Shown here one piece after another: positions 6,375 through 61,300 of a DNA stretch of 64,000 bases; within the stretch, counting starts at the first letter, position 1, and each line of letters opens with the position of its first letter. The position numbers were made by a program, and so were the translations under genes. The notes under the pieces are model-generated. The model saw nothing but the letters and a program-made list of their open reading frames with translations. It was not told the DNA's origin and ran no database searches. The DNA comes from Adineta vaga (Eukaryota > Animalia > Rotifera): NCBI GenBank assembly GCA_021613535.1, contig CP075497.1, forward strand, positions 372,001-436,000, given 5' to 3'.

Positions 6375-6444
6375 TGGATGTGAAGGTGAGGGGTGAGGAT
6401 GTGGGTCTACATCTATCCAACAAACACACACCCTCAAGATGGTT
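6375..6444. repeat. Telomere-like palindromic linker S1 (spacer family B)
   Basis: GGTGAGGGGTGAGGATGTGGGT-CTACATCTATCCAAC-AAACACACACCCTCAAGATGG. Confidence 0.85.
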
Positions 6445-6928
6445 GCCCTATTTATCGCATATACATATACATATATATTGCGGGATATGTTATGGTAATG
6501 TATCTAAATTTTTAAGTGCATCCGTCTCGGCATCTCCTGTCGTTGTTCTGACGCATGAAGTTTTCGGCTCGGAAGGTTCTGAATCAGCGTTGGCTACCTC
6601 CGCTTGTACTTTATATTTGATGACCTAAAGAAATTATTCTCTATTATTCTTTTCAAACAAATAAGAATCAGAGTTTATAAAAAAAGTCAGTGAATCAATC
6701 AGTTATAACTGTCTCTTTATTCCTATATAATTTATGTCGATGCTTCTCTATCAGTGAATCTCACAAGAAAAATCTTAACGAATTAGTTAATTCTATTACC
6801 TTCTTCAGTAATTATTGATTCTCAATCTACAAACACGCCGGGTTAGTTCTCTACTACATATTGTGTAGTCATTCTATAAATTGTTAAGTCATCATGTGCT
6901 TCTCCCACATCTAGCTTATTATTATCTT

Positions 6929-8135
6929 CTAAAATGTCTTACCGTTTTCTAATTTTAATGGTTGTTTTTTTCTTCTTATAAATGTCACCACTCTTGGTAT
7001 AACCAATCGCCAAATAGTTATTAATCCACCCGCAAGTCCAATTAATGATGTAATAATATAAATAATATTATTCCTTGTTTCATTAATATAACTACATTCT
7101 TTTGGCTGACATTCATTATAATATTTTTCATATTTTATCGAAATATTCCATTCTTCAACCATTAACCGATCAAGAAGTTGTTGAATTGTTGAATTTATTG
7201 AATAATTACTTGATAATGATGCATCAAGTGATGTCATATTCATTGATGTTGATGATGGTGATATAAAATAGGATTGTAATTGAGTTAAACAGTTTTGATT
7301 ATAAAAACATTGAAGATTTGATTGAAGAAGAGCTTCGACAATAAAACATCCTCGAAACATACCAGGAACATTATATATGGGCGTATTGTCCGGATAATTA
7401 AACATTGAATATGGTCTAAGACATTTTGCTGAAGCACCGCAGCTGCAATTGGAATATGTATACGAGCCAGTTCTCACAATATTGGAATCATATGGTATTA
7501 CAAGTTGATAATTTGTTACTAATGCGGAATATAAACCATTACTTTGAGTTGTACTCCGGATCGTATCAAGTGAAAGAATAAAAGTATTTGTTATTGATGA
7601 TTTAAATTGATCAATGGATACTTTAATTTGTGATTCAAATAAATCTAATGATGTTACTGTTGTACTAACGTATTGATTCAAAAAAAATGTTAGCAAATTA
7701 TCAGAAATTGTTTTATTCACTAATTGACAAAATCCACTCAATGCTTGAAACGTATTTGCGCCTGACCATCGAAAGTCTGATGAAAAGAACTCGCCAGATT
7801 GAAAATAATTAGAAATATACTGAATCCATTGTTGAGTAACATAAATACTTGTACATACTTGATGTAATGTATAATCAATATGAAGAAATGTTTCATAATT
7901 AGTTAATATATTTTTACATGGACATAAAAGTGTTTGTGAATATAATGAATAATGTTGTAAATATTGATCATATGTTGGGTTTGGAATAGTTGATGTTTGT
8001 GAAATTGTAATCAATGAATTATATAAGAATAGAATAAATAATGAACTCATGAGAAAGAAAATAAATAATCTTGTTGATATGCGTTGATTACGAAGTTCAT
8101 GTTCATTTGTCGAAGGTGGTATAGATTCGAAAAAA
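6929..8135 (-). CDS. Orphan 2-TM Cys-rich module (copy B), close paralog of 1997-3267
   Basis: ORF 6929..8203 nearly identical to copy A outside two blocks; similarity stops near 8135, upstream of which the sequence looks like a TE end; donor GTAAG after ENG. Confidence 0.75.
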
Positions 8136-8511
8136 TTGAGAGCTCTGGCGAATTGCGAAAATTTTCCGCAAATTTCTCGAATTAACCGAACAATGGTGGC
8201 CATACTAAATGCATGAAAATATTACAATTACGTTAAATAAAACATACTGGAACGGTTTCATATATTATTGACAAATTTTGAGAAACGTAAATGACATCGA
8301 TATGTGAATGTTACGAGAACTCATCGTACACAGTAGATATGTAGGTAGGAATTATAAGACTTAAAAATTATTTTCTCGACTAGAAATGCGTACGACGACA
8401 CTACTGTTATTGGCGGCAGAGTAGTGGAGCAGTACGTCGTGTTCTGAGAGTAATAGACATCAATGTGTAGGAATGTATCAATACCAATACTATTGGTATT
8501 GGTACTGGCAC

Positions 8512-8664: not shown

Positions 8665-8683
8665 AATTTTGATGCTGGTATTG

Positions 8684-8746
8684 GCTGTGAGTGAGGATGG
8701 GTGTACATGAGGCTATGCTCTTAACACATACCCGCACTCACACGCA
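8684..8746. repeat. Telomere-like palindromic linker S2 (spacer family C)
   Basis: TGTGAGTGAGGATGGGTG-TACATGAGGCTATGCTCTTAA-CACATACCCGCACTCACAC. Confidence 0.8.
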
Positions 8747-9522: not shown

Positions 9523-9588
9523 TCTTGAGGGTGTGGGTGATGGTGTGGGTGAGGCTTATGAGTGAAGTCTAACCCACACCCACACCCT
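9523..9588. repeat. Telomere-like palindromic linker S3 (spacer family A)
   Basis: TCTTGAGGGTGTGGGTGATGGTGTGGGT-GAGGCTTATGAGTGAAGTCTAA-CCCACACCCACACCC. Confidence 0.9.
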
Positions 9589-11961
9589 TTCAAAACTTAA
9601 TCAAGGAAATGTCGCGTTACGTGGACAAGCCGTAATGAAAACATGATTTAAGTGGGATGTAAAGAAGAGCACTGAGATTATAAGTTGCATAAAGATACTA
9701 TAGTGATGAATCAAGCGGCTAACTGTACTCAGTTCGAGGGTATTCGTAGCATCTTACTAATTTGATTGCGTCACTGAAGTATCTAAGCTACTACAATACT
9801 GTGAAGGTTGTTAACTATGCTGATACTACGGAACGTAATTAGGTGATTAACTGAAAAGTTGCATTCCGACTTTATACTGTAGGAGAATATAGCAAAGAAC
9901 TATGAATGATAATATATTATATACTCTGATTTCTTATTTGTGAAAGGTTTAAATCCAATAAATATTCACTTATTGAAACTTGTATAATACCAGATCAGAA
10001 ATAGTTATATGGATTTTTCGAAACGTTGTGATGGTAAGGAATAACTGTTATAGTAAGTTGAATATAAATATAATGTTTCTTGATGAGTTTTTTATTATAA
10101 AATAAAATGAATTTGCTACATAAAAACTAGTTGAGAGAAAATTCAAATATTAATGAATAATACTGCGTTTTTTTTCTACAAAGTTAGAATATGATAGATA
10201 TGGAGAAAAAAAATGTATTGAAATATTTCAACGAGAGAAAGACAATTATCTCAAGAAAAAGAACAATATTCATTGACATGAAATGAAATACTTTTTCTTT
10301 ATGTTATATTGTCAATAGTTTTAAATAGTTTGTATTTTCAACATATGACTGTAGCATATTAGATCATAAGATGGTTTTGTGCAGTCAGAATAATCTATTG
10401 AAAATAGAAAGATAAAACTAAAGAAGATATATTCATTTTAAATAAATATACAACAATACAAAATAGTTTTTTATGAAAATAATTGTAAAAAAAATAAGAA
10501 AAATACTTGTTTGCGATAATAGTTATTATCATATGTTAAAATATTAGTTTTATGGTAAAATCCTTGGACTTTTTCATTTTAGTATGTCACAATAAACGTT
10601 TCTCTAGGTATTTATATACTTTAAAAATAAGTCAAATAATAATTATCTGTTAAGTTCAATAAATAATTTTGGATTTTCAATTATTTCTACATTGTTAATA
10701 TGAAATTACTTTTTTTTTCAATTTATTCAGGAAGTATTTAAATAACTAATTAATTCAATTTTGATTCATTTTTTTATTTTCAAATCATTCATACTTTCTT
10801 TTGTTCTATTTATTATTAAAATAGAGTCATCATGCCCAATGAAATACAATGAAGTGCAAAAACAAAATTATCGTTTTACCAGTATTTTGTACGTTCTTTG
10901 AACTATTATTCTATGGAGTTATTTATAAATTTTAGATTCTACCTTTTCAGATTGATATTGCTTGAAAATTTTGATACCGTTTCGTAAAAATAGTTCATAT
11001 TTCAACCATCAATTTCACATGACTGACCTAATAAATCATATTACATTATTGAAGTAATGATTATATATGGAAGAATTTTAAAGCTGCAGTATACGAATGA
11101 TATTTACTTATATTAGTTATGAGAAAAACTTTTAGATTGAGAAGTGTAGCATCGGTGGTGTAGTGAAACTATTGATCTACTAACGATATTAATATCAAAT
11201 TAGCTGAATTCTACTCTCATAGATGATACAAATGAAAAACAACGAAGAGCAGAATGAATTGACAAGATTTTATCATAGAAAGTGTATTACAAAATGTCTT
11301 AATGTCTCATATTTGTATAAGAAGAACTCTGAAAAATTAATTAACAATAATTTTTTATATTCCTATTAATTTAATTTGTCATACTATTAACGTTCTGTTT
11401 ATTGGGAGCGATTCTCAAATTGATCAATCCAATGTTGGATTCAATAAGTGACGATCAGTATACTCCTATAAAAAAGAAACACTCATAAAATTTGCAACAA
11501 TTAACATTTTTTTCGACCGAAATCTGGTAAGATTTGTAAACCCTGAGTGTAGTAGAAAATATTTTTGAAATTTCTCGAATGGAGTATTTATTTGATTATT
11601 AGAAAGTATATTACTATTCTATCTAATTCAAAATATCTCTCTTTGTGATTAATCGTGTGATATCGAAGAATATGATGTAAGTTGTTTGGAAGAATCTCTG
11701 AGTTGTATTTCATGACAATCACGAATATATATAAATATTATGTTATAAATTATTTTTGAATATCCTATATACAATGCCAGTTTAAATAAAACATTTCGTC
11801 AAAGTTTCCATTTATTCAACGTAAATTTGTTTTTCTGAACGAAAAGTTCTCGTAAATTCCTCTTGTTAGATAAAAAGGAAATAAATTACTCAAAGTCATC
11901 ATCACGAAAAATATTCTCGATTTATTTATGGAAAGTTTGACAATTGGAATCTTTGTGAGAA

Positions 11962-12057
11962 GAGTGGGTGTGGGTTAGACTTTACTCATAAGCCTCATCC
12001 ACACCCTCAAGATTAACTATGGGTGAGGATCTCATTATCAATCATTCATACCCACAC
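11962..12057. repeat. Telomere-like palindromic linker S4 (family A, inverted) plus a second degenerate unit
   Basis: GTGGGTGTGGG-TTAGACTTTACTCATAAGCCTC-ATCCACACCCTCAAGA, then ATGGGTGAGGAT...CATACCCACAC. Confidence 0.9.
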
Positions 12058-12188
12058 TTTCGTTCAAATCTCTTGAATCTAATTAATCAGTTTGAATTTA
12101 AGATACAATCCACTTGAAAAGCATAAAGAGTTATGAATATTTCTACGACATATTTTTAAAAAATGACAATAAATTTCATCTTATTAAT

Positions 12189-16031: not shown

Positions 16032-16084
16032 ATCTTGAGGGTGTGGGCGTACGTGTCGGATAGATATAGTACCCACACCCTCAA
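16032..16084. repeat. Telomere-like palindromic linker S5 (family B, inverted)
   Basis: ATCTTGAGGGTGTGGGCGTAC-GTGTCGGATAGATATAGTAC-CCACACCCTCAA. Confidence 0.9.
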
Positions 16085-16341
16085 TTCAGTTGAATAAAAG
16101 TTAAACTAAATCATAATAATATATGAATGAATAAATAATCGCAAAACATTATCTATGGCTCATCAGTATGAGAATATCATAGATCAATGTTTTATTATGA
16201 AAGAAAAATTAGAAAATCATATGAACGTGATAATAAAATACGCACGTATTTCTATTTCCTCTTTCATCACTGCACACAATGATGTCAATGATATTTTATG
16301 GTAGTAAAGAATATTAATTGTATGAAGAAGATACTAAAGAG

Positions 16342-22265: not shown

Positions 22266-23656
22266 ATGGCGTCTCATGTTAAGCTTATATGGCTCGATAA
22301 TAATCTCGATTTGCATGTAAAAGCCCGTCTTACAGATGTAGAACCTAATTTGAGTGTTTTTCTCGATAGTGAGACTTGTATCGACCATATTTTCTCGACA
22401 TTATCAGAATCCGACAATGTATTTCTGATAGTTTCGGGCATACTTGGTCAACAAATAGCACCAATAATTGACGCTCTATCACAACTACATGCTATTTATG
22501 TCTTCTGTTATGACACAAGCAAACATATGTTATGGGCAGCACAATATAATAAAATTGGAGCCAACCGAGTCTTGAAACACGAGAACGATTTGATCACCCA
22601 GCTTACAGCTGATATAAAGAAAGCAGTAAACAAGGTAAGTTTCTGCCAACTAAAATATAAAACTCACATATCCCATGTAAATTAAAAAAACTTGATGTAA
22701 CCAATTGCTAAAGGAGAAGTATTCATTTCATCAGTTTACCCGAAACCATCAATTCTAAATATAATAAGTAATAAGTCAATAAAGTTTTGTTATCGAATTT
22801 ATTCAAAACATGTTGTTACGACTGTAGCATGACATACGATTAGTATCATTATTGATACTTATAAAAAGGAATGAAATTCTATGCCAATGAATACTTGCAA
22901 GCAGATTTGAGAAACGATGTATATTATAGAAATATTTTCTATATAGGAAAATTCATAGAAAACAATTCATGATGAAATGGAAAGTATCGAACGAGAGGAA
23001 ACGATATCATTTAGTGTATTTGCTGCAAACTCGGAAAACATGACTACACGTGATTTGTCAAAAGAAAAGTTATGTTTACGTGGCTTCAAGTTTTCATACA
23101 CATTTTGATTCATATGCCTCAACTAGAAATAGAAGCACGTAAAGAATTGATTGATGTATGTCATCAAGAATACAAAAACGATCAAAAAGAACTGCAATTC
23201 ATCGAAGAGTTTCGTTCTCAATATGTCCCTGACAAAGCAATTCATTGGTACACACGAAATACATTTCTGTTTCGGTTGCTCAATCAAGCATTAAGAACAC
23301 AAAATATTGATATTATTTTCAAGTTGCGATTAATTATTGTTGATATTTATAAGGAACTCAATCAATTGTTTCAATCGAATATTCATAATCCGTCTATTAT
23401 TCATGTGTATCGTTGTCAACCAATGATACTTGTTGAGAAGTTAGAAAGATTACGTAACAATTTGAACGGACTAATTTCAATAAATAGTTTCTTGTCAACA
23501 TCAACTAATAAGAACATTGCAAATCGGTTTGTGAAAAAAATGAGTTTAAAACCAGGAGAAACAGTTGGTGTATTGTTTGAAATGACAATTGATGCACGAA
23601 TTGCTAAAACAGCAGATACACCATTTGCCGACATCAAAGCATTCAGTGCTTATCAA
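22266..23656 (+). pseudogene. Receiver-like plus ADP-ribosyltransferase (R-S-E type) gene, truncated at linker S6
   Basis: LIWLD N-terminus, WYT..FLFRLLNQALR, VYR, FLSTS, PFADI; ends before the ExE motif; apparent frameshift near 23070; intron after about 22634. Confidence 0.8.
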
Positions 23657-23853
23657 CGTGTGGGTGTGGATGGAGTGGTTATGGGCGCGTCTGTGGGTGT
23701 GAGTATCCGCTGAGAGAAGAGATGTCCACACCCGCACCGACCCTCAAGATGGACATCTCTCAGGTACACTCACCCACATTCACACCCACACCCAGATCAT
23801 CAATACCCTCACCCATATCCATCCACCGAGAAAGCTACCACCCACTCTCATAC
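23657..23853. repeat. Compound telomere-like palindromic linker S6 (family D)
   Basis: G-rich arm 23657-23704, spacer GAGAGAAGAGATGT, CCACACCC...CCCTCAAGATGG, followed by further C-rich tracts. Confidence 0.9.
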
Positions 23854-24218
23854 TTACGAACAGTAAACTATCGAAGCATTTTTAACGACGTCATAAATCT
23901 TTGAAGACCATCTTATCGAAGTTAGAAATTCTTTGATTTATTGTTGTGTTCTTTTTACTGTGATAATGCACATGATTTTATTGTGCTTCAAGAGCACAAA
24001 AGTGACAACCCTATGAAAATGTATAGTCATGTTAGGTTATCAGTTAAAAGTGCTTGGAGATTTCCAAGCTCCATGTCATTCTGCTTGAGCTAAAAAATTG
24101 TATGCAGGAGATAGTATGCTTGTGCTCTCATAACACTTAGTAGTAACTGCAGAAACCATCCTGTCAATTAGTTACCCGTTTTGATAGCAACATCACCGAT
24201 AGTCTCTCAAATTAGAGG

Positions 24219-27200
24219 ATGAACTGTCGGGTAAGTGAGGAAGATGCTGTGCTAACATGGTTAGTCGACAACAACGAACAACGCCCGCCGATAGACAGAG
24301 ACATCCTGCAAACTGTCATAGCTGACGTTCGTGTGTTTTCTGATCCGAAGGAATTTATTCAATGTCTTGCTGCCCTGTACGACGAACAAGTATTTGTCGT
24401 CCTCGACCAATGGCGCACATCAGTCTTGAATGAATTGAATGACTTCAGTTGGATTTTGTGCATCTATCTACAAGGTCCGTATGATGAGTGTGCGAATGAT
24501 AAGGTGCGTGGTTCGAACCTTGATCTGTCTGAGCTGTTTCTTCTACTGGCTCGCGATGTAACTATTTTTCGTCGTCCGTCTACTCATTTAACATATCGCG
24601 TGTCTAATAAAGAAGCTTCTTCACATTTTATTCGAGAACAAGAAGCTCGTCTTGTATGGTCTCAATTGTTGTTGCAAGCGATTCTAACTATCCCAGCACC
24701 TGAATCCAAATCAGCATATGACAATCATAAGGATGCTATCGATGAATGCTTTCGTTTTTACCAAGGCGATACGACTGAGCAGAATCGAATTCGACAGTTT
24801 GGTAGCTCCTACACTCCACCTCAAGCTATCTACTGGTACACACTCGATGCCTTTCTCTACCGCGTATTGAACCGCGCATTGAGAACACAAAATATTCTCG
24901 TCATTTATAAGTTTCGGTACATTCTTCAAGATGTCTATCGGCAATTAAAACAACTCTGGCTAGCTCAACAGGCAACGCACACCAAAGGTCAGTCGATTTG
25001 TTGGATAGACATCATTATAAGACAGTTCTTCTTCATGGCTGTCAAAAACAAAGAGTACCCATAATTTCCTACAGCCCAAGCAGACAAGGCACGCTGGAAA
25101 AGGCGTTTAAACGCTCAGTCGGGAACGCCGATTGTGACTCATTCACGCTCAAAATAAAAACGGCATTTTTAGCGTGTTTCCCGTTTTCAGCCTGACAAAT
25201 TTTCACTTTTAGAGCGTGTAAACGGCGAAAAATACAGTTTTTGAACGTAAAAATGTGCTTTTACATATGACGTTGTTCACGTTTAAAAATGATGCGTTAT
25301 ATCGCTCGAAAACTCTTTTTTTCGTCGTTTACACGCTCTAAAAGTGAAAATTTGTCAGAGTGAAAACGGAAAACACGCTAAAAACGCCGTGTTTATTTTG
25401 AGCGTGAATGGGTCACAATCGGCGTTCCCGACTGAGCATTTGAACGCCTTTTTCAACGTGCCCTGTCTGCTTGGGAGGTGGCGGCGAACGGTAATCTACC
25501 AAAACAAAAGTCTAAGACTAGGCACCGAAGCACTTTTCTGCAACTGGTCCTTCGAAGGATTTGAAGCGTTTTCGAAAGCCGTCTCTGGCGTCCAGAACTT
25601 TCTCAAGATCAACAAATGGTAGTCTTTTCAGTGATAAACGATGAGGCTTTTCAAGCGACCTTCCACCGATAGAAGCGCTGTACTGTGTTTTTTTCTCGGA
25701 ATTTCTTCAGAGGTCTCTCGAATGGTCTGTTGTTTCTGAGGGATGCGTCCCAGGTCATTCTTGCTCGGTTGAAAACAGCCCGAGTGGTTTATTTTCCGAC
25801 CCCTTCTTTGTACCCCACATCCGGCCGGATTTCACCGTGCAAATTCAGTGAATTTCCTGTCGGTTCCTGAGTGTTCCAGCATCGACCGAGACAAAACTGA
25901 TTCGAAAGTGACGGGAGTTTACCGTTGACATACGGCCGGATTTCGGTGACAAGGAAAGTACTGAAACATTACGAAACTAGCCGGGGGTGACTGAGGCCGG
26001 AAAAGGTGGACACCCAAACCTTAAGCCAATCCCCATCTCACCTTTACTCCAAACTAGAAGATGCGTTTTCAGTCACTCGACAAGTATCTGTGGAAAGAAA
26101 GCAGTTAAGAAAAACAATTGAATGGACGAAGTTCCATTGTTGCTCTCGTCGAATATTAAGAACAAAATATAAAGTAGCTGAACATGAGTTCATCTTTTCT
26201 CACAAATATGACACGCTCTAGTTAAGGGTCCGACTGATAATTCTTTGCGAGTAACAACGTGAAATGCAAAATTAGTTTCAAAAGATTTTCAGTAGAACTT
26301 TACCAAAAGGCCCTATTGGAACATCCTCTTATAACAGGACACTAGTGAGAAGTTGCATGTCAGGAGGCGCGAGAAAACGCCAGGTTTTCCCCTGCCGAGC
26401 AGCATTCCACGTGCAACAGTTCAGAGTCGAAAGAATATCAATGTGTGTATTCTGTTGAAGCAAAGATCTTTCATCGGACATCATGACTTTAACATACATC
26501 AGCCAAAAGCAATTTCACTCGCTGGTGTTATCAAACCTTCGTAGGAATTGTGAATAGCTGTCTTTTTTCGAGTCTAGATTCAACGGTTACAGTGTACCGT
26601 GGTCAACTGATTACATCCGAAGAACTAATGAATTTCAAGCAGAATATCAATGATGTGGTCTCATTAAATACGTTTTTCTCTACAACATTCGATCGTGCGC
26701 TTGCCGTCGCTTTCTCCGGACAAGGTCAACAACGGCCTCAGTTGGAATCGGTTGTATTCGAGATCATCTTGGGCAATTCGTCGGTCGAATCCAATGATGA
26801 AAGTCCGTTTGCTGATATCTCTCATTTGAGCTCGATGGCATCAGAAGGAGAAGTGCTATTATCCATGGGTAGTATCATGCGTATAGAATCGGTGCACAGC
26901 GACGTGATTAACCATGTCGAATGGATTCGTTTGCGTTCCTGCTCCTATAGCAATCCTCGCTTGGCTGGTCTGAAAGGGTTCGCCCAACAGTACGTGTCAG
27001 GTTTACAGAATCATGAACTGGGATTAATCATCCTCCTGGCTTTGCTTCTCGACGCGATGGGCGAGCGTGAGAAATATGTTAGCATGGTTGAGTTGGCTAA
27101 GAGACGAAAAGCAGAAATAGGCATTATAGATCCAGCTTTCGATGTTTTGCTTAGTTGCGTTCAGTTGAAAATCTCCTCGAGTGCATTGGACGAGTATCAA

Positions 27201-28025
27201 CGTTGGGATGAAATAATTGACAACTCAAGCGTCTGGCAAAGACAGCAGTTTCCTGGGTCATCAACCATCGATATGATTGATTTTACGAAAAAAGCGCAAT
27301 CTTTTTTCATGAAATATAACCAACTCATGGATTCAATTCGATTATCGCCAGGTCAAGACCGGGATACAGCAGATTTTACTCGTGACATCAGCAGTTTTCT
27401 AGAGAAAACCCTCCCAACAGTTCTCAATTTCCCCGACGGTCATCCGCTGCGCGTACAATTCATAGCACTTTCGGGTATGCTCAGATTAATAACTGACCAA
27501 ATATCAGGACGAAATGAAGAGCTCGAAGCAGCGTTAAATCTTTTGAATATTGACGGAAGTCCTCATCATCCTTTACGCCACGACATCTTGAGGGGTCTGG
27601 CTTTGCAAGCAGAAAAGGTCGGCGATGAAGAGAAAGCACTCGACTTGTACATACAGGCGCTTGATATTCCCAATCCGTCGGTACTGAAAAACGCCGAGAA
27701 TCGCGCGGAGACGAGTTTACAAATCGCACATTTGCTGGAAAAACGAGGTAACATCGAGTGTGCTGAAGAGTTCTGTACAAACGTCATAAACATGCCTGAA
27801 CTTCCTCCATCTTCTTGGTACATAAGGAGAGCACTTTCTCAACGCATTTGTCTGTATAACGACCAAAAGCGGTGGAGTGCAGCGTTAGCTGATTGTTTTT
27901 CTTTGAAGGATTTCTTAGAGAAATATCCTCAGTCTACGAATGAACACGCTCTACCGCACATAAATAACTATAATATTATGCTACTCATGCAGAAAATGTC
28001 ACGAGAATCAGAAGACGACACATAA
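24219..28025 (+). CDS. ADP-ribosyltransferase-TPR protein, two exons
   Basis: Exon 1 24219-~24988 (WYTLDAFLYRVLNRALR); exon 2 ~26579-28025 with VYRGQ, FFSTT, SEGE and TPR-like helices; AATAAA near 28061. Confidence 0.85.
25075..25475. mobile_element. Foldback MITE in intron
   Basis: ~155-bp near-perfect inverted arms starting CCCAAGCAGACA and ending TGTCTGCTTGGG; 2-bp AG on both sides. Confidence 0.9.
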
Positions 28026-28090
28026 TTGTACGTTATTTCATCCTCCTAATATCTTCGTTCAATAAATATATGCCAACTCAGCCGCTGGAA

Positions 28091-28157
28091 TGAGGGGTGG
28101 GGTGGGTCTGGATTAATATGCAAAAGGAACACAATTCTCTTACCCCACACCCTCGAG
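28091..28157. repeat. Telomere-like palindromic linker S7
   Basis: TGAGGGGTGGGGTGGGTCT...CTCTTACCCCACACCCTCGAG between two convergent 3' ends. Confidence 0.8.
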
Positions 28158-33031: not shown

Positions 33032-33326
33032 TTTCGTTATTGTAGACTAAAATGAACTTTGATCAAATTCGATTGATATAATCTCAAAAATACTCTTATT
33101 TTATCTTCTATGTTTAACTAATAACTGATAATAAATGTTAAATATATATATATATATATATGACATATCGTTTTGTTTTCGAACATCTGTGACTCTGTCA
33201 AACTGTCAAACATTCTATTTCGACAAGATAAACTCAAATATGATCACGCTGTAATTCATTCATTGGCCGTTTTAGTTTTACCTGATATATTATTTAAAAT
33301 TTTTATTTTTAAATTAATTCAATCCT

Positions 33327-37324: not shown

Positions 37325-37366
37325 AGGGTGTGGGTACTACATCTATCCAACACCCACACCCACCCT
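37325..37366. repeat. Telomere-like palindromic linker S9 (family B)
   Basis: AGGGTGTGG-GTACTACATCTATCCAACAC-CCACACCCACCCT. Confidence 0.9.
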
Positions 37367-37810: not shown

Positions 37811-38457
37811 TTCCGAAAAAAAGGTCGAGAAATCTGGCAGATGATTGAGAAAGCAAGAAAACAGTTTTTCTAAAGTGTAATTAAAATCGATTATTTCCAA
37901 TCACGTCGATTAAAATTCATTATTTTTTTCACAAAATCGATCTTGACAAATTAAAGACAAAAAAATCTATTAAAACTGATTATTTTCCGTGTTATAATGA
38001 ATTAAAATGAATGAAAACTTGAAAAATCCGTTAAAATCAATTATTGGATCAAATTTAATCGCACAATGACATACCAAATCAGATTTTATTAATTTTCTTG
38101 AAAAAATCGATTTTAATCATATTCTCCATTAGTTTTTTTCTACATGGGTAAACTCAATATAAAAAGATTTCTATAATACCATTATTTGACGAATTACATT
38201 GATTAAAGGTCGTTTGAAAACACAAGAATTAGATTCGTTAATAGAAAATATTAATTTCATGAGTGTCTGTATATGAAATATTCGAATACATATGTCAATC
38301 AAAAAATAAATAATAAAGCATTTACTTCGTTATATTGAAGAGCATTTATCAGATGAAAATGATCTTGATAAGTAATATTATTTGATTTAAGACTTAATTC
38401 AATCAGCTTCTAAAAAGGAATCATACAAATAGAACATAATGAAGAGTTAATCAAGGA

Positions 38458-38512
38458 TGAGGTTGTGGGTGTGAGTATTTCATTTCTCTTCACACACACA
38501 CACACACCCTCA
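38458..38512. repeat. Telomere-like palindromic linker S10 (family D, inverted)
   Basis: TGAGGTTGTGGGTGTGAGTA-TTTCATTTCTCTT-CACACACACACACACACCCTCA. Confidence 0.85.
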
Positions 38513-38587
38513 CATGACAATTGAAAATCTAACTGGACGAAAGTTACAACACGAAAACGATACGTATTCTGTTGAAATAAATCTCGT

Positions 38588-39210: not shown

Positions 39211-39695
39211 CAAGTCAAAAAGAAGTTTCGTCTAGACGGTAGAAAAATAGAATAAGCTCATCAATACCTCGTCCAGCTGGCGATGTTTCTGAATTGATAC
39301 AAGCACTGGTAGGCGATACTATTGTTTGTTTTGTCGTTTTTGAAACTAAATCCAAGAGTGATTTCATAAAATATAGGTCCAATTCAGACACTTTCATATC
39401 AAATAGTTTTTTTTACATTTATTCAGTTACTGGTGTTGAAATGGGAATAAACGAAAAGCAGAAAGCTGGTAAATGAAAGGTAGCTTCCACTTACGACTCA
39501 TACTTCTGTTTGTATAGCGGAAAATACTTGCTTTCATTGTAGTTACTACTAATTGCGACCACTTTTTTCTCAGTGATACAGAGAAGTGCTACTCGTATAA
39601 ACGTTATGTCACTGATGTCTCTTTCGAGCATATTCATTTTTATATCAGTTTTCCACTTCTGAATGTCATGCTAACATTAAATAAACTTCGGCACA

Positions 39696-39754
39696 TGAGG
39701 GTGTGGGTGCCAGAAAGAGAAAGTATCCACACCCACACCCACCCACACCCTCAA
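39696..39754. repeat. Telomere-like palindromic linker S11 (family D)
   Basis: TGAGGGTGTGGGTGCC-AGAAAGAGAAAGTAT-CCACACCCACACCCACCCACACCCTCAA. Confidence 0.9.
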
Positions 39755-40734
39755 CAACACTTGTTGGTCTATTCAATGGGATAGCAACTGGCGCTCCAAA
39801 ACCTACTATTGTCATTGCATTTAGTTGGCCAGGTTGAAAGAGCTGAATTCGGTTATTATGACTATCCGCTACGAACAAATTAAAGTTCTCATCGACAAAA
39901 ATTCCATGCGGATGATCAAGCATATTGGGTACTGGCCCAGGACATCCAGTACCAGCCACAACCATTGATATGCTTGTATTACTGTTATGCTTTAGCTTGA
40001 ATATTTTATATTCATTTGCGGATGAACAGTAGAGATCATTAATGATATCAATGAAGAGTCCTGTGCATGAACTATTGATGTGCATTACTGATGTACCATT
40101 TGTACGATTCAATGTCTATCTATCGACTCGACTATGGTTATAGCCATTGTCGATAAAGATATCACCATTGCATGCGACAAAAAGGCTCCGTGGTCTGATT
40201 AAATTTTCCGAAATAGTTTTCTTTAGAATCAGCGATCCATTATATCCTATTACTATATGATTATTCAGTAGAACGCTCACATAGATGTTGTTTTGAGTAT
40301 TGACAAAAATGCCAGTGGGCTGATGGCCAATCAAACTTTTGTTAGCTAATTTTGTTGCATTTGTATTCCATACTGTACATGAACTAAATTTAGGCTGATT
40401 GAATGAAATACCTGATAAATTTTAAAAAAATTCTCCTCATTTTTACAGACAAAATATGACTGAGGTACATTTGAATATCTTAGCGATAGCAAAGACCAAA
40501 AATTTTTCAGACTTAAAGATGTGTTTATTTTATTAATATGAATATTGCGAAACGATCTAAGTGGTGTATCTTATCTCACAGCTAAAATTTTAAATTGATG
40601 TACTCTTCTGTATAGGAGTAAACCAATTAAACGAAAATCTAAAAATTTTATTTACTTCAATCAGCAAAAGAATGTCTACCTGAACTATTTTCAATGAGTA
40701 ATGCCATTGTCACTATCCAAATTGTAGACGACAT
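39755..40734 (-). pseudogene. Secreted NHL-repeat protein, premature stop, truncated at S11
   Basis: Short signal exon from 40734; SFNQPKFSSCTVWN; LDHPHGIFVD..VADSHNNRIQ; in-frame TAG at 40116-40118; breaks at LNRPTSVV. Confidence 0.8.
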
Positions 40735-41213: not shown

Positions 41214-41333
41214 TTAACAATGCAGTTTTTTGGTATTAGAATAATCATAACGCTATGTTATTTTATTTTTCTACAAAAAAGGGCATTGATCGGATTGTCG
41301 CTCCGCAATCCACATAAACTGAGATTAGGTTTA

Positions 41334-41349
41334 TTGAGGGTGTGGGTGC
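41334..41349 (+). repeat. Half linker S12 (G arm only)
   Basis: TTGAGGGTGTGGGTGC. Confidence 0.6.
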
Positions 41350-41700
41350 TACGAAAGCTCGATACTAAAGTAATAACTAAAAGTTGCACTCATGTTCAGA
41401 TTTGGTATCTTCTTTGAAAAAAACATTATTTATGGTTCGCTAAAGCTTCTTGAAATCTTTAAGACATTGATATCATTCATTATCGTGGTATTAACGATTA
41501 AATTCACAAAAACTCCTCCACAGTATCGAAAGATCTATTTGTGCAATATATATTGAAGTGGTCAATAGGGCTTGTCCAAACGTAACGTTGTGACATTTTT
41601 GACATATTTTCATAGGATTTTCTCGAGCACCATAAATGCTAGAAAGTTCATTTAAATATTGTTAGATACAACTCATTAAGTTCTACCAACGTTAGAAAAA

Positions 41701-41772
41701 TGAGGGTGGGTGTGGGTGATCTGGGTGAAATTTCTCCCACGTGGTTCCGTGGGTTATAATGCCACACCCTCT
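41701..41772. repeat. Linker S13
   Basis: TGAGGGTGGGTGTGGGTG...CCACACCCTC; may overlap a TE fragment. Confidence 0.6.
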
Positions 41773-43467
41773 TTTTATAGTGCTTACCTAGGTCTAGAAA
41801 ATAGGTCACAATGTGATCGGCATCATCAGGGTGAGTGTGAGGAATCAGTAAAAAAACGTCACACGCTTATATTTTTCCTACCTTTGCACTTTGGCCTTAT
41901 GCTGTATTTTATTATTATTCTTATAATCCTTTGTTCTTTTCTCTTTCGAAAGGGTATATAAGTGACTATTTTGTGTGAGAACGATACGATATATGATATG
42001 AAGAAATATAGGGAAGCGTAGCTCCATCAGCGCTAAAGCCTCTTTTATCACAAATTATCACAGTGCGGGTCAGCAGAGAGATCTTGGTGACTTTCAGCTA
42101 AGTCTTCTTTGAATTTGAAGGCCTCAGATGAACATAATCCAGGCATCAGCAATATGCTATCGAGAACAGATTTGGAATCTTGTACTTTTTCAAGTGTAAG
42201 GAAAAAGTGAGCGCATAACTAGAATCAATCGATATGTGTGCATCCATACGTTCATTCGCAAGACAAATCCTAAAAGGCTAATCCGATTACGATGAAATTT
42301 CTGCAGAGTCTTGTTTCATCAATATCTCACTGTAGTTCGAAGATGAGCTTGATTGGGTGAGCCGATGCTGGGTTATTGGAAAAATACTGATATTTTCTTA
42401 TATCATCTATCCAATACACTTTTTGCAGTACACATAACTTTCGGATAAAATCCGAAGTTTCCGCGTTTATTCTTTTTATTCTATCTTTCTTTTTCTATTT
42501 TTATATTTCGCGCATTCTAAAATCAACTGTGACATATATATTCTAGATGTTTTTTTATATTAAAAATTTGGTTACAACCTGACTAAAAAAAGATCATGAT
42601 AATTCGAGCTGATGTATCTGTCTTATAGTAAGAGCTAGAAGCATAGAAAACAACAAATTTTTCTATGAAGTACCAAGACTTTTGGATCACCCTGTATATA
42701 TGTGTGGTATCGAACCGCACATAAGACATATATATATAACAGAACATAATAAAAGAAAAGTTAATGATAACAAAGAGTTAACTGTTATCGCTAACATTTT
42801 CCTAATCTTATTACGGACTCAGCATGTAACAGAGTTTACCATCAAATTCAACAATATTCAAAACTGCTCGTGATCAATTCTTGAACAATCTTCAAACAAA
42901 AATTATAATAAGTTTTTAATTGAGATTTAATGGCATGACTTAACCGGACTCAGTTTTTGCGAGAAAACGGCTTGACTTGTGAGAACGTCTGATTTACCTA
43001 TCACAGTCTGTGAGATAAGCGTTATTTATTAAGTTATCCTTTGATAAATTCAAAGTATTGTCGTTCTATTTTTGTTTATTCTGATTTTGTGGTATCTGAA
43101 CAAAAATAAACTTTTTATTCCAGTCACGAGAATCGTATTGAGTGCGTAAATGATGGCAGTGAAAAATGATGTTATCGAATATCAACTTTAACTTTAACTT
43201 TTACAGCAAAGTTAAAGTACCATTCCAATTAGAATCAGTTATCTACACAACTAACATCTCCAATGAAAATTATTTGAAACAGATAATCCTATGCATTGAT
43301 AAATGACACATAAAATCAATATGAACACATGAACTATATTCAGACTTTAAATCATAAAACGGTCTTAACCTTTCACTATGCTTAAATTTGATTGGTTTAG
43401 ATTAGATTTAGGTATTAAACCATCTCATGAGAACTGTAATAGGTTCGAAACCACTCATAGCAGCTGG

Positions 43468-43484
43468 TACTCACCCTCACCCTA
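43468..43484 (-). repeat. Half linker S14 (C arm only)
   Basis: TACTCACCCTCACCCT about 480 bp upstream of the TIR-NACHT start. Confidence 0.45.
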
Positions 43485-43958
43485 TTAGTCTACTGTTTTA
43501 CTAATCAGCAATTCTCACTCAAATAAATTCATATGCAAATACAAAAATTTGCAGTTTTATTCCTCACATGGCCAATTTATTTTTTGCTCGTTCTGTTCAG
43601 TTGTGTCGCAACAGTCTAACTATTTTTTTTCTCATCGCTTTCTGTTACTATATCGACGTGTGTTATGTTTAGTTTTAAATCACTTTTTATTTGCAGCTTT
43701 TTTCTATTGGTATGAGTTATAAGATAGAAATTTTTAAAAATAACTGAGCTCAGAATTATCTATATATAAGGACAGTGGAACAGACTAATAAATAGTAAAC
43801 AAGTAAACATTTCTCCGTTAGTTAATTCTATAAAAAAAAGGATATTTTATCCGTACATCACGTTCTATTTATTATAAATCAGGGACATCTGTATAAAAAG
43901 AAGAAACGATTATTATACTATTGTTCTCATTCTTATACATTTTCAGTTATTTGACAGT

Positions 43959-48462: not shown

Positions 48463-48927
48463 TACAGAATAGCCCGTAAATAACACGACGATAAGAAATT
48501 CAAATATTTCCTTCGTTTGTCAACCAATCGCGATAAAACTTTTAGTCGTGACAGAGGCTTATTTAAAGTTTTTTTTTCCATACGATAAATATCAATACGA
48601 ACTTATCACTTGTAACGGGTTCAAAAAATGTTAAAAAAGTGATTTTAGGATATTATTACAAAGGTTTTCTCGTCTGTTTTTTTTTCAACTGTTACGTACA
48701 CATGATAAGATTCTAGTATCACTAAAATGTGTGCCTTAGTAATTTTCAGATTCAGAATTAAATATGGCACGACGTCAGTCGAGTGTGCACGAGAAAACGT
48801 GAATTATCAAACGCGTGTATCATGTTGAATATCTAATCAATGTGCAAAGATTATGGTGTAAGGAAATAAATAAGAATCCTACACATTGAGATACTATAAA
48901 ATTATTGATGAACAAATTTGAACAGAC

Positions 48928-48997
48928 TGGGTGCGGGTGTGGGTGAGGGTTAGAGGTAAGAGTATAGTCAGACCCACGCACACACACACCCACCCCT
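48928..48997. repeat. Telomere-like palindromic linker S15 (family C-related, inverted)
   Basis: TGGGTGCGGGTGTGGGTGAGGGTTAGAGG-TAAGAGTATAGTCAGA-CCCACGCACACACACACCCACCC. Confidence 0.85.
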
Positions 48998-49141
48998 AGA
49001 ATAATCGAAGTATAAAGGATATATGAAAACAAAGAGCACAAACAACACATTGTCTTATGATCGCCTGTATATATACGTCCGTCGGTTTCAGATGTTTGTA
49101 TATATTATTTTCTATCTTCTTCACTAAATCTTCGTTGTACG

Positions 49142-50756: not shown

Positions 50757-50800
50757 TCTTTTGAGGGTGTGGGTGTGGGTGAACTTACATTCACACTCTG
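50757..50800. repeat. Linker S16
   Basis: TCTTTTGAGGGTGTGGGTGTGGGTGAAC-TTAC-ATTCACACTCT. Confidence 0.8.
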
Positions 50801-52124: not shown

Positions 52125-52192
52125 TCTTGAGGATGAGGGTGGATGCGGATGTGCATGTCTATCATATACTCTCACCCACACCCACACTCAAG
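52125..52192. repeat. Telomere-like palindromic linker S17
   Basis: TCTTGAGGATGAGGGTGGATGCGGATGTG-CATGTCTATCATATACTCT-CACCCACACCCACACTCAAG. Confidence 0.85.
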
Positions 52193-53539: not shown

Positions 53540-53592
53540 GAAAGAGAAAAAGTCGCACACTAACCATCTTGAAGGTATGGGTGTGGATCATG
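53540..53592. repeat. Degenerate linker S18
   Basis: AGAAAGAGAAAAAGTCGCACAC (family D-like), then AACCATCTTGAAGGTATGGGTGTGG. Confidence 0.7.
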
Positions 53593-57019: not shown

Positions 57020-57077
57020 TTGAGTGTGGGTGTGGGTATACATGAGACTATGCTCTAAATCCACACCCTCAAGATGG
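57020..57077. repeat. Telomere-like palindromic linker S19 (family C)
   Basis: TTGAGTGTGGGTGTGGGTA-TACATGAGACTATGCTCTAAA-TCCACACCCTCAAGATGG. Confidence 0.9.
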
Positions 57078-57114
57078 TATTGCCATGTAATATGATGTCG
57101 TAGATTAAAGCTAC

Positions 57115-57178
57115 GAGAGGGGTGCGTGAGGGTATCTTCCCTTCGCCTACACTGCACACTCACACCCCATCCTCATCT
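57115..57178. repeat. Degenerate linker S20
   Basis: GAGAGGGGTGCGTGAGGGTA...CACACTCACACCCCATCCTCA. Confidence 0.7.
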
Positions 57179-57414
57179 TCACGTAAAAATTCGAAATAAC
57201 ACTCGGTCTATTGGGATTTCTGTATGGTATTATCTATTTCAGAAAATAATTCATATTGACATTTAATATTCTATTTGCTTATAGAATGCATCAGATAAAG
57301 AATTAAAGACACGTTCTTTATGATTACTTACATTTAATATATTTTGTATATGTGATCATTTTAATTTATTCATTTAATGTAAAAGAACATCATCCTACAA
57401 TATATTAATTAAGA

Positions 57415-58128
57415 ATGATTCTATATATTTTAGTTATTGAAATGTTTATAAGTATGAATGCATTGTTTCATTTATATCATACGGATATGAAAATCAATTC
57501 TTCTGATGATAAACATTGTTTATATTCATTTACAATCGACAATACTTTAAGAGAATGGCAGTTAATACCATATTGTATCCGAAATAATCTTTTCAATTCT
57601 GACGATCGTGATGATCTTTGTTATGGAGATGCATATCTTGCATTTGACGAACTGAAATTGAAAGGTGTGAATAGTCATAATTTATATAACTGGAATGCAC
57701 CTATTGATATAATCAATAATTATCAGAAATATCTTAGTAATACTGATTCATCAGTTGGTATTCATTGGTATTGTAATTGTTCAGGTGAGATAATTGTGAG
57801 ACTTTTGACATTGAGGATATCAAAAAGAGAATATGTATAGATAATTGGTTTGTTATAGTCGATGTAAATATTCATTTGATCAATTTAGTGGATCAACTAC
57901 ATTCGATGAAATACTTCTATTTCAATTCGAAGAAAAACAACCCATAGGAGATAACTATGATAGTATCAATGATGTATCTCTATTGACATGTTATGAAGGA
58001 ATTCAATGTCATTCAACAATTTGTCTTGATTGGCGAGAAATTTGTAATGGAATTTTCAATTGTGAAAATGGTGAAGATGAGCCCGAAGAATGTCCTTTAC
58101 TTGAATTAAATGAATGTCAAAATAATGA
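57415..58128 (+). pseudogene. 5' fragment of LDLa-GPCR family gene, truncated at S21
   Basis: Homologous to the 16342 gene N-terminus (PYC, CNCS, CLDWREICNG, ELNEC); stops at ECQNNE. Confidence 0.8.
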
Positions 58129-58209
58129 GAGTGGTGTGGGTGAAAATGAGTTGGGTGTGTGGGCGTGGGTAGTGATCTCTTCTCTATGCACACCCATACT
58201 CACACCCTG
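58127..58209. repeat. Telomere-like palindromic linker S21 (family D, inverted)
   Basis: GTGGTGTGGGTG...GGGTGTGTGGGCGTGGGTAGTG-ATCTCTTCTCTATG-CACACCCATACTCACACCC. Confidence 0.9.
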
Positions 58210-58388
58210 CGGACGGTCAGTCCAGACAGAGTTATTTTATTTTGTCTGTAAAAACGTATACTGTAATAGGGTTCTCAAAAATAAGTGATTATTTATCAGC
58301 ACTGTAAGCGAAATATGATAGGCAAATATCGAACTCAATACGTAGAAGACAAAAAGCAGAGCGAGAGAAAAAGCGGCATGATATCTGT

Positions 58389-61300
58389 TCAAGGTATGGT
58401 TGGAACATTTCGTTCGAATGGTATTATTCGATTTCCATTAATGAATCTTCGTCTGATAGTTGGAATAAGAAATTGAAGAATAACAGTCACCATTAGTGGG
58501 ACAATAAACTTGTAAACCTTTGTCAATCCACCAATTAATCCGATCACTTCTGTTATAATATAAATGAGACTACCGCGAGCAATATACGTAGCAATGCAAC
58601 TAGTCGGCTCACATTGATTAAAATAACTTTCGTACGATGTTTGATTATCCCATATTTCAACCATCAAGTTTGAAACGATTTCCAATAGTGGACTGGTTGA
58701 TTGATAACGTGTTGAATTTGGATCTAAGACAATACTAGATGCATGAACGTTGAGATCTAGATTGTCGCTTAGCTCTTTTAAACATTCAACATCAAAGAAA
58801 CATCTCAGATCACTTCGCAATACAGCTGCGACCATGTAACAGCCAACATACACTCCTGTTAAAAGACAAAAATTATTTCCTCAATGAAGTCTATTCACAG
58901 ATACACAAATATACCTGGTATACGGAAAAGCGCAGTCTTCGCACGTATATCATAGACTATTGCCTGTTGCACACACCACGCTGCTTGCTGACAATCACAT
59001 TTAACTCCAGTAATAGACGAATTGTAAATTTGATCTTGTCTGTCATAGGCATAAACATAATCATAATAAAGTGTTTCATAAGTGTACTCTGGAAATTGAG
59101 TCAGGATTGAATCAGTGGACAATGCTGACATTAACATATTTCCATGTGTCATATTATTATTCAGAAGAAGTGTACTAGTGAATGATCGAGCTGTATTTTC
59201 AATGAATTGAGTGATGAATTGATTTATTTGAACGTTGAACTGCTGTTTGAAAATCAAATTTGGTGTTATAAAAGCTGTCGATTTAAATGTCAACAGTTTT
59301 GTGTTGATTGTTTGTACGGATAGCTGACAAAAGTCATTGATCACTTGAAAAAAAGGACTTGCAATATTCCGAAAATCGTCGACATTAGTATCGACATAAG
59401 TAAAAAAGCCATAAGTGCCTTTTACACTTGGATAATCGACTGTTACCCATGGCGAGCTAGAATTGATAAAATCACTTGAGCAAACTGAATGTAGACTTGT
59501 TGGCTGTAATGAAATGAAGTTTTGATATTCGACTGATAGCCTTTTACATGGGCATTGAACTGATTGTTGATACTGTTGGTAGAGTGAGTTGAATTGAGCT
59601 ATGTTGGGGTTGTTGATTGTAACAGTATATGTTATATTCTGAAGAGAATCATAGCCAATCAACACGATGAGTGTAAGAAAAAGTAAAAGAACGAAGACAC
59701 GCGTTGAAATACGTTGCAGTTTCAGTTGATCTCTGGACCGTCTGTGTGGATTTTTAAATAAGTTGAAATCAAAAATAATTGTTTTAACCAACGTTAATAA
59801 GTGTTGAAAACGGTTAGCCCTTATGTTGACTGTGGTAGTTGCTAGAATGAAGCAGAAAATGTTAGCATCGGGTGCACATTTTGACAGTATCTTTCAAATC
59901 AACATGATGGCGCAGAGAAATAAACTCCCCACATCATTCAAGCTTTTTCGATTCGGATTCTCTCTACGAATTGTCCTCTATGTATAAGTGACTGGGCTAG
60001 GTGAAAAATTGAATTTGCCGTCGATCGTTGTTATTTTGAACGTATGTCATTTATAAAAGTGAAAATTTTTCGAGATATTCGGATTCTTGTGTTCTGTGAC
60101 ATGCATCTTTTGCCCTATGTTTGGTCTCTGGAAAGTTCTCTTTGGGCAAAATGCGACTATAGAAAATCCAATCCAGGACTTGTGGACTTATTGGAATCAT
60201 TTTCGTCATTGAGTTAACAATGACAGTAAGGGCGTAGATACAATTGCTTTTCATGATTTAAACAAGTGTACTTCGTCGCATACACGGAGCAGTCTTCATG
60301 ACTTACTGACATCATGTGTGCTTGAAAGAGAGAGAGAGAGAGCTATTCGGAAATTTTGAAGAAGTGTCGCATAGAATTTTCTTGGTTGGCTTAATGGCAC
60401 TACTGATTGAAGAAGACGATTTCGAAAGCTTTCAGATACTTTAAACTGTTCGAAATTATAACAAGCTGCTTCAACCACATCCTCAAGATGGTTTTAGTGC
60501 TGATCTATACCCGCGAAAATTCTAGTATATCGAAGGAAACAACCTACCATTGATGGATGACCTTTGACGGAACGAATACTTATCAATGCAGAATCAAATT
60601 ATGTATTTGATTCGATCATGTAGCACGACAGCACAAGTCACAACAGTTGTCCCGGAATAAATGTTCCTCTCACTATTTAACAGATCTCTAGCTCAAATGA
60701 AACGTATACTCGAAATTTTTCGAAATATGTCCCATAAAAGTTTTTACAGAGCCTTGGGAGACGAGTTTCTGTCACGCATGAGTTTGAGATGATATCGAGT
60801 CAACACTACAATGCTAAATTTGTGGACCTGATCATGTCACTTCTTGTCGCTAGACAGATACGAGACCTCACTGTAATGCCGTTTTTCCATGTCTTGAGCG
60901 TTCTCTTCCGATGAAAACGACAAAGAATATCATTACCCTTCAACTCGGTAAAATATTTGAATCTGTACTAATTTTCGTTTAAATATAACAAAATTTAACA
61001 AATGCAAACTATCTCAGAGAAAGGCCTTAGAAAGTCGAAATGGGGACCAATTAACAGGCTTTCTTCAGGTAAACTCACTATGTGTCTTCAGAAAAAATCC
61101 GCTTACTTAACAAAGCTCTTCACGGGTTACACACCGGCCTGTGAATTATTTCGTAGCGTGGGCTCGATGTAACTCCATATTCATTTATGGGAGAAACAGT
61201 TATTCTGGGACAACCGTTAGAGCGAATCGATTGGTAATGAACCATACATCTCGTACTTACCATTTTCTTGTTCAAAATGGATTGGTGGTCGCTTCTTTCG

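Follow-up and report, generated by a model that had tools for sequence, protein, structure and literature searches.

Bdelloid rotifers survive massive DNA breakage, and their subtelomeres are rich in genes, foreign genes included. De novo telomere addition by telomerase (chromosome healing) is established, human 2q13 is the site of an ancestral head-to-head telomere fusion, and the Tec/TBE transposons of ciliates carry telomeric repeats in their inverted ends. Closest to the elements described here are the Athena/Terminon elements, whose 3' end consists of a hammerhead, a tail and a C-rich tract (PMC6431247, PMC8557442). Endonuclease-deficient Penelope-like elements (PLEs) use the exposed 3' ends of telomeres or double-strand breaks as primers, with capping to follow (PMC3846280, PMC6431247). 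Breakpoints in Adineta vaga lines show neotelomere and Athena signatures (PMC13564844), and short interspersed telomeric repeats are already known from bdelloid subtelomeres (PMC2861651, PMC8494291, PMC13564844). We analysed a 64,000-nucleotide stretch of A. vaga chromosome 6 (C6:372001-436000, called the window below), which is subtelomeric, lies 0.37-0.44 Mb from the contig end, and carries many short palindromes made of a G-rich arm of telomere-like repeats, a spacer and a C-rich arm. An original prediction, made from the letters of this DNA, had read them as linkers joining gene-sized modules. C1-C6 denote the A. vaga chromosome contigs, L-numbers (e.g. L016) label sequence stretches compared with the window, and genome-wide counts refer to the whole six-contig, 100.8-Mb A. 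vaga assembly.

Anatomy and distribution of the palindromes

Telomere-like tracts were present at all of the coordinates listed in the original prediction (22/22), and the 12-mer TGAGGGTGTGGG, with at most one mismatch, matched the window 20 times against an expectation of 0.02. Our own scan of the window detected 32 G-rich and 25 C-rich telomere-like tracts, nearly all of them paired as a G arm, a spacer of 1-38 nt (as delimited by the tract caller) and a C arm. There were 17 clear hairpins, together with degenerate and single-arm sites, and some sites were additional to those listed before (12017-12061, a C-rich run at 23765-23850, and 41826-41843). The G-rich arm came first and the C-rich arm second, as predicted. 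G-then-C adjacencies (within 60 nt) numbered 35 and C-then-G adjacencies 8 in 282 kb of A. vaga sequence, and the strict pattern TGAGGGTGTGGG-N10-40-CCCACACCCTCA was found at 48 sites genome-wide, compared to none for the reversed control. Counts of paired and single sites were 38 hairpins and 54 single tracts. Three of the four sites previously described as half sites (33327, 41334 and 60472) were indeed single tracts; the fourth, at 43468, is explained by an Athena-type end with a mutated hammerhead core at 43410-43485.

The original prediction had proposed a genome-wide scan, and the outcome was a distal rather than uniform distribution: all 48 strict sites lay no farther than ~4.1 Mb from one of the contig ends, and there were none in the central half of the genome. 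C2 contained no match for either the strict pattern or the F2 22-mer described below, C4 contained few, and chromosomes 1, 3, 5 and 6 contained many. Hairpins were sparse in 10-kb samples of the first ~270 kb of C6 and dense from ~280 kb on. Telomere arrays were absent from the contig ends examined.

In Logan contigs from four DNA runs of four studies (2013-2022), coverage of the hairpins at 37323, 38454 and 39694 extended into the flanking sequence (for example, contigs covering 38437-39753 and 37332-37776). These three junctions, at 37323-39760, are therefore supported by independent data and are not assembly artefacts. Predicted folds of the hairpins as single-stranded DNA were stable (z from -2.1 to -9.4), and no Rfam ribozyme or other family was found in the hairpins at either gathering or permissive thresholds.

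The arms had a median length of ~20 nt and ranged from 12 to 153 nt. Two sites in L016 (C6:100-110 kb) had arms of 76-153 nt and spacers of 9-15 nt; in one of them a 9-nt spacer separates arms of ~150 and 130 nt. At L026:305 a 20-nt G arm faced a C arm of 107 nt. At long sites (e.g. L016:8344) the variant repeats TGAGGG and TGGG were not mirrored between the arms, and therefore neither arm is a copy of its partner. Arm similarity was 0.69 when anchored at the inner ends and 0.71 at the outer ends, values that do not separate fold-back copying from independent synthesis.

The outer ends were nested truncations of AACCATCTTGAGGG. Most arms began at T(T)GAGGG, and about one quarter retained at least four more letters, so that the outer motif proposed earlier (AACCATCT / AGATGGTT) is real but mostly truncated. 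A near-complete symmetric unit, CCATCTTGAGGG...CCCTCAAGATGG, was present at L040:630-720. The outer end CCCTCAAGAT also closed several single tracts and, in L044, the C-rich tail at an Athena-type 3' end with a hammerhead, indicating that it characterises the starts of telomeric tracts in general and is not peculiar to the palindrome. In one Athena-type family (window 43410-43418), the 5' strand of hammerhead helix I together with the beginning of the core reads AA(A/G)CCATCTGA, which resembles the hairpin lead-in AACCATCTTGA; this may be a coincidence or a clue to the origin of the lead-in.

The spacers fell into recurrent families that were found in either orientation. These were F1 (TACATCTATCCAACA), F2 (TATCTCCTCTTCTTTC and related pyrimidine-rich forms, reading GAAAGAAGAGGAGATA in reverse orientation), F3 (TTAAGAGTATAGYCTGAC) and F3b (TAGACTTYACTCATAAGCCTCA), with F1 and F3 spacers recurring on several chromosomes. 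A 22-mer composed of the F2 spacer and the start of its C arm had 66 copies genome-wide, 18 of them identical, and the control had 0. The junction of the F2 spacer with the C arm was invariant, and that with the other arm varied by 1-2 nt. Of the dedicated linker suggested in the original prediction, what stands is that recurrent spacer families fit some templated linker step.

Flanking sequence, genes and relatives in Rotaria

No target-site duplication (TSD) was detected at the palindromes, the longest direct match between flanks averaging 3.9 nt as compared to 4.2 nt at random positions. Ragged ends without a TSD, as originally reported, were thus borne out by these flank matches and by the nested outer truncations. 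Homology stopped at the palindromes in several comparisons. The copy of a dispersed sequence at 41565-41700 stops exactly at a G arm, while its 97% paralog (C5:16.50 Mb, L001) continues for ~110 nt to a hairpin of its own. A repeat of ~770 bp is cut at different internal points, and followed by a G arm, in L006 (L006:545) and L003 (L003:420); the cut repeat overlaps the lead-in motif by 1-3 nt in these two stretches, and the sequence past the L006 hairpin is unrelated to the remainder of the repeat. An all-against-all comparison of 318 kb yielded no alignment that spanned any of the 38 hairpins, and four alignments ended at the left boundary. Empty sites with continuous flanks were not found in paralogs or orthologs, among which close paralogs were few; flank paralogs in this search were mostly repeats ending at the same place, and assemblies of the same species were identical.

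A change in composition was also seen. The sites at 23655-23850 and 28099-28156 delimit a block with a GC content of 0.39-0.49 (background ~0.30), the right edge matching to within ~200 nt. A foreign origin of this GC-rich module found no support, its homologs being bdelloid members of the ART/TPR family with 28-45% identity. The absence of TSDs, the ragged ends, the interruption of paralog homology and the composition block indicate that the sites act as junctions and not as ordinary transposon insertions, in line with the original prediction.

Homologs of a 588-aa open reading frame (ORF) led us to syntenic loci (Vint, the 588-aa gene, TRAF-MATH and Ras) in three Rotaria species, sp. Silwood1, sp. 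Silwood2 and R. magnacalcarata, and these were compared along with bdelloid-like metagenome contigs (ENA). Palindromes of the same architecture were present at all three Rotaria loci and in one of the two metagenome contigs scanned (L045), some of them with arms longer than 100 nt. A spacer family specific to Rotaria, CATGTAAAAGATCACTCA, occurred in both orientations. Hairpin positions differed between Rotaria species of 83-90% identity, whose intergenic regions align only partly. A Silwood1 hairpin (L046:12488-12536) lies inside 366 unaligned nt where Silwood2 has 2.6 kb, a gene included, and homology between the two species resumes 31 nt past its C arm. A hairpin was found downstream of homologous genes in both Adineta and Rotaria. 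The 588-aa gene adjoins a Vint-domain gene in A. vaga (the pair at 12192-15662) and in the three Rotaria species (L046, L049, L051), but the Vint gene has the inverse orientation in A. vaga. As annotated, the A. vaga protein of the 588-aa gene has 424 aa, 71% of the open frame.

The gene-sized modules of the original prediction hold only loosely, since the distance from one hairpin to the next varies between 56 nt and 9.2 kb and two or three genes lie in some intervals. Overall, inter-hairpin intervals hold 0-3 genes on both strands, divergent pairs included, and the three genes between 16085 and 23655 have no intervening hairpin. Hairpins are read through by three short ORFs (147-149 aa), of which two are NHL and LDLa fragments and the third is unknown, as expected for genes cut by a junction; tblastn with homologs for the truncated NHL gene gave no match. 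The 5-kb LDLa-GPCR block has four collinear paralogs, with noncoding parts too diverged to align. One LDLa-GPCR paralog has a hairpin upstream at a nearly equal distance, of another spacer family and with long perfect arms, and it is therefore a separate, younger event.

Origin of the palindromes

The explanation that we favour, with confidence about evenly balanced, is that the palindromes are end-joining scars, in which two telomere-capped ends were fused head-to-head via a short templated spacer. The ends that met would be the top-strand 3' end of a left fragment and the bottom-strand 3' end of a right fragment, each first extended with bdelloid telomeric repeats by telomerase or by an Athena-type (endonuclease-deficient Penelope-like) reverse transcriptase. 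Extension would start at a variable point in AACCATCTTGAGGG and proceed as TGTGGG-type repeats, and joining the capped ends head-to-head would give a G arm, a spacer and a C arm on either strand. One of the ends would be extended further by copying a short region 5' of the C-rich telomere-complementary tract in an RNA template, a step suggested because the spacer is contiguous with one arm and falls in recurrent families. The product could then be ligated, or template-jumped, onto the other telomeric end; a junction that is fixed on one side and variable on the other fits run-off or template jumping followed by ligation. A candidate reading of the telomerase RNA template is CCCACACCCUCAAGAUGGUU, and the AACCATCT lead-in could derive from the telomerase template or from another RNA. 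The anatomy, the read support at three hairpins, the distal distribution, the lack of TSDs, the homology breaks at arms, the spacer families and the occurrence in Rotaria are all observed, whereas the acting polymerase, an RNA source for the spacer and the succession of steps are inferred. The subtelomere would thereby be a patchwork of fragments.

If this is correct, the palindromes may record how bdelloids rebuild and patch chromosome ends. They would be an abundant signature, readable in the sequence, of one joining route in subtelomeres, and their built-in markers (arm start, spacer family and spacer orientation) could reveal the enzyme and the end that was extended first. A regular form of RNA-templated stitching, with fragments capped at both ends and a telomerase-related reverse transcriptase that bridges them via a dedicated spacer template and jumps, is a possibility that we raise tentatively and consider doubtful. 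Were it true, subtelomeres would grow as chains of capped fragments, providing the physical route for assembling foreign genes and shattered chromosomes after desiccation, and each hairpin would stay a latent pair of telomere seeds for chromosome breakage and re-healing.

A number of observations weigh against end-joining scars. Arm lengths are correlated (rho 0.43, median difference 5.5 nt), which is also expected of a copied unit. None of the 17 hairpins lies inside an ORF of at least 150 aa, against a coverage of 42% (P about 9e-5), and five of the 17 are at most 200 nt away from an ORF 3' end (11.5% expected), with none that near a 5' end; random breakage alone would not yield this avoidance of ORFs together with a lean towards 3' ends. 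Two paralogs of 68-70% identity have hairpins of different spacer families at a similar position upstream of the same gene, and recurrent events or selection would therefore be needed. A hammerhead-bearing parent was found neither for F3b genome-wide, the sole match being the window's own hairpin, nor for F2 in the one orientation searched, and the tails of ~40 hammerhead-bearing ends match none of F1, F2 and F3. No empty or pre-junction allele was seen among the sequences compared.

Several of these observations would be accommodated by the main rival, which we judge to be rather unlikely: a self-contained small mobile element, with ends that are often truncated, inserting between genes. This could be a hairpin-shaped non-autonomous retroelement, whose hairpin RNA of ~60-80 nt is copied by the reverse transcriptase of an Athena/PLE or a long interspersed nuclear element (LINE), or a foldback DNA element resembling a miniature inverted-repeat transposable element (MITE), with telomere-like inverted ends. 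The many near-identical copies of the F2 22-mer, the spread of F1 and F3 over several chromosomes, the symmetric ends of a defined maximal unit at L040, the usually similar lengths of paired arms, the absence from ORFs of at least 150 aa and the hairpins of different families at a similar place in two paralogs would all follow from such an element. It is at odds with the lack of a TSD and the raggedness of both ends, with arms of up to 150 nt and pairs up to 5-fold unequal, and with an outer motif that also closes single tracts and Athena tails. Moreover, at 41700 and L006:545 the left flank is cut short and the right flank is unrelated, no alignment in 318 kb spans a hairpin, and an autonomous partner or unit-length source was not found. 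A MITE or terminal-inverted-repeat DNA transposon in the strict sense was rejected on the missing TSD and the lack of fixed termini (arms of 12-153 nt, e.g. 20 against 107 nt). If the palindromes are mobile elements instead of scars, they are unusual ones, with telomere-repeat arms and without TSDs.

The position relative to genes could also reflect selection, whatever the origin of the palindromes, if they were kept between genes as cis-elements of subtelomeric genes, acting in 3'-end formation or termination, as an insulator or telomere-protein site, or as a source or target of small RNA. We regard this as improbable. Besides the absence from long ORFs and the excess near 3' ends, it would explain why the architecture, and a hairpin downstream of homologous genes, occur in both Adineta and Rotaria, why the predicted folds are stable, and why arms are near-perfect beside paralogs diverged by 30%. 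Yet many genes lack a hairpin, such as the three between 16085 and 23655, positions are not conserved between the Rotaria species, many copies are degenerate, the region appeared in no RNA run searched, and the 3'-end bias is weak and expected of any intergenic element in a compact genome. The integron-like sites of the original prediction, with attC-like palindromes and a dedicated recombinase excising and inserting gene cassettes, fare worse and are very improbable. The resemblance (imperfect palindromes whose outer boxes are conserved and whose centre varies, often located immediately 3' of an ORF) is superficial: Pfam scans of 20 longer window ORFs gave no recombinase, genes occur on both strands and each brings its own upstream region, sites do not occur one per gene, arms are telomeric repeats of 12-153 nt, module paralogs share neither boundaries nor spacers, and single arms are about as common as paired ones. 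What survives of the earlier interpretation is the geometry of joined capped ends, the junction-like behaviour and the linker-like spacers. Chimeric joins at telomere-containing reads, that is, an assembly or sequencing artefact, have a next to negligible probability; telomere-like k-mers are repeated and Logan contigs do break inside arms, but contigs of four runs from four studies cover hairpins with both flanks, and three Rotaria species, assembled independently, share the architecture, as does an ENA metagenome contig.

Features of the window and comparison with known systems

The sites are listed in Table 1. Pfam scans of 20 of the longer ORFs gave a gene set typical of bdelloid subtelomeres, with TIR-NACHT-HEAT, pentapeptide-PLAT, Vint-domain, LDLa, GPCR, ART/TPR, Laminin_G_3, NHL and transglutaminase-like proteins. 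Looking up the window's own gene by exact protein sequence returned no record. Neither a reverse transcriptase nor a recombinase or integrase domain was found among these 20 ORFs, a scan that covered the window only. At the very end of C6, ORF 1869-3248 of L011 (C6:1-10000) encodes a reverse transcriptase, Penelope-like by eye from motifs in its translation, with its sense strand pointing inward and no telomeric tract after it.

Table 1. Palindromes, single tracts and associated features of the window (window coordinates)
Position	Feature	Strand
6375..6444	Hairpin, spacer F1 (TACATCTATCCAACA); right arm closes with full outer motif CCCTCAAGATGGTT	
8682..8746	Degenerate hairpin, F3-type spacer reversed	
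9524..9591	Hairpin, spacer F3b (TAGACTTCACTCATAAGCCTCA) reversed	
11961..12011	Hairpin, F3b spacer as at 9524 in opposite orientation	
12017..12061	Degenerate second hairpin abutting 11961..12011; ~130 nt downstream of stop of ORF 12192-13955(-)	
16034..16085	Hairpin, F1 spacer reversed; 315 nt upstream of LDLa-GPCR paralog block; fold z = -5.5	
23655..23850	Compound site: two G tracts, purine-rich spacer, C arm ending CCCTCAAGATGG, extra 57+12 nt C-rich run; left edge of GC-rich block	
23851..28098	Example module: GC 0.39-0.49 block with ART/TPR-family ORFs; C arm on left, G arm on right	
28099..28156	Degenerate hairpin, 77 nt past stop of ORF 26493-28022(+); right edge of GC-rich block	
33326..33341	Half site, single G-rich tract	+
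37323..37366	Hairpin, F1 spacer; with flank in contigs of 4 runs	
38454..38515	Hairpin 76 nt downstream of Laminin_G_3 ORF 38591-39181(-); contig 38437-39753 in 4 runs	
39694..39760	Hairpin, F2-type purine/pyrimidine spacer, unequal arms; NHL-repeat ORF 39669-40115(-) runs in	
41333..41350	Half site, single G-rich tract	+
41565..41700	Dispersed-sequence copy, 97% identity to C5:16.50 Mb, ending where next G arm starts	+
41701..41773	Hairpin-like start of ~770-bp dispersed repeat (41702-42471); copies share G tract, inner palindrome and C tract	
43410..43485	Penelope-like/Athena-type 3' end: mutated hammerhead core (CTCATGAG..CGAAAC), 18-nt tail, C-rich tail	+
48927..48998	Hairpin, F3 spacer (GTAAGAGTATAGTCAGAC)	
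50760..50800	G arm abutting dispersed-repeat end, short spacer, vestigial C arm	
52127..52191	Hairpin 84 nt downstream of transglutaminase-like ORF 52275-53099(-)	
53562..53590	Single G arm after full outer motif AACCATCT; 42 nt from stop of ORF 53632-54159(-)	+
57020..57079	Hairpin, F3-type spacer reversed; right arm ends CCCTCAAGATGGT	
57119..57182	Degenerate hairpin, 46 nt past hairpin 57020..57079	
58131..58209	Hairpin, F2-type spacer; ORFs on either side converge; traversed by LDLa ORF 57845-58285(+)	
60471..60494	Half site, single C arm ending CCTCAAGATGGTT	-

Other repeats were noted in the window. Dozens of copies of the ~770-bp repeat, with 75-95% identity, are spread over all six chromosomes. 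At its 5' end two sub-units stand in tandem, and in both a G-rich tract is followed by a small perfect palindrome (TGGGTGAAATTTCACCCA) and then a C-rich tract; some copies carry ~72 extra nt near 42105-42115. Three MITE-like repeats (40963-41217, 50063-50416 and 50417-50707) have matches at many loci; those of the first and second occur in both orientations, and the second and third have copies in chromosome interiors as well. Two of the three are nested beside the G arm at 50760. A dispersed repeat of ~2 kb at 3374-5332, with 89% identity to C1:684101-685942 and many partial copies, is flanked by the paralogous genes 2000-3529 and 6932-8221; at C1:14.52 Mb these lie closer together, and a third copy joins them in tandem. 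The 2.3 kb at 9600-11950 have 24% GC and no ORF of at least 70 aa, and lie between two oppositely oriented F3b hairpins.

The palindromes share features with several known systems. As in a telomere fusion of the 2q13 type, the G-rich strand runs into the C-rich strand; fusion sites, however, are rare, long, degenerate arrays without a recurrent spacer, whereas the hairpins number hundreds, are short, lie a few kb apart and fall into spacer families. Healing scars are resembled in that repeats begin where known sequence is cut, in the orientation of a 3' extension and with a 1-3 nt overlap (41700, L006:545 and L003:420), but such scars are single tracts in one orientation, and most of the arms here are facing pairs with a family-specific spacer. 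MITEs and foldback elements are likewise short, dispersed, intergenic inverted-repeat units in recognisable families; the hairpins differ from them in having no TSD, no fixed termini and no autonomous partner, and arms that are sometimes very unequal or long. Integron attC sites and bacterial REP elements are also imperfect intergenic palindromes with conserved ends and variable centres, unlike which the hairpins have arms of telomeric repeats and accompany genes of mixed orientation without being one per gene, with no recombinase in the 20 ORFs scanned.

We found no account of the paired, spacer-bearing form in the searchable literature, although an earlier description is possible, as the primary Athena/Terminon work lies outside that search. 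Rfam found no hammerhead in the window, where a mutated core is present only at 43410-43470. The spacer was considered as the hammerhead-cleavage tail of an Athena RNA, and this was rejected, there being no core 20-50 nt upstream of F2 in the orientation tested. Athena copies, as summarised in PMC6431247, PMC8557442 and PMC3846280, have repeats in one orientation, being capped where the 5' end is truncated and tailed at the 3' end, and they also contain a hammerhead and a reverse transcriptase. In the hairpins, by contrast, the second arm is inverted so that two tracts face each other, without a ribozyme and without a coding part. About 40 ends in the A. vaga genome, one of them in the window, have the form of a hammerhead, a tail of 12-25 nt and a C tract of ~20-28 nt. 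What the two systems share is a C-rich, telomere-complementary tract of ~20-28 nt after a short family-specific tail, the outer end CCCTCAAGAT, a subtelomeric location and, under the reading favoured here, priming on exposed 3' ends. The C arms of the hairpins match Athena-type C tails (L043, L044 and ~40 others) in size and outer end, and hairpin spacer and C arm together have the layout and size of an Athena tail and C tract, several spacers sharing the same ...ACTCAY boundary.

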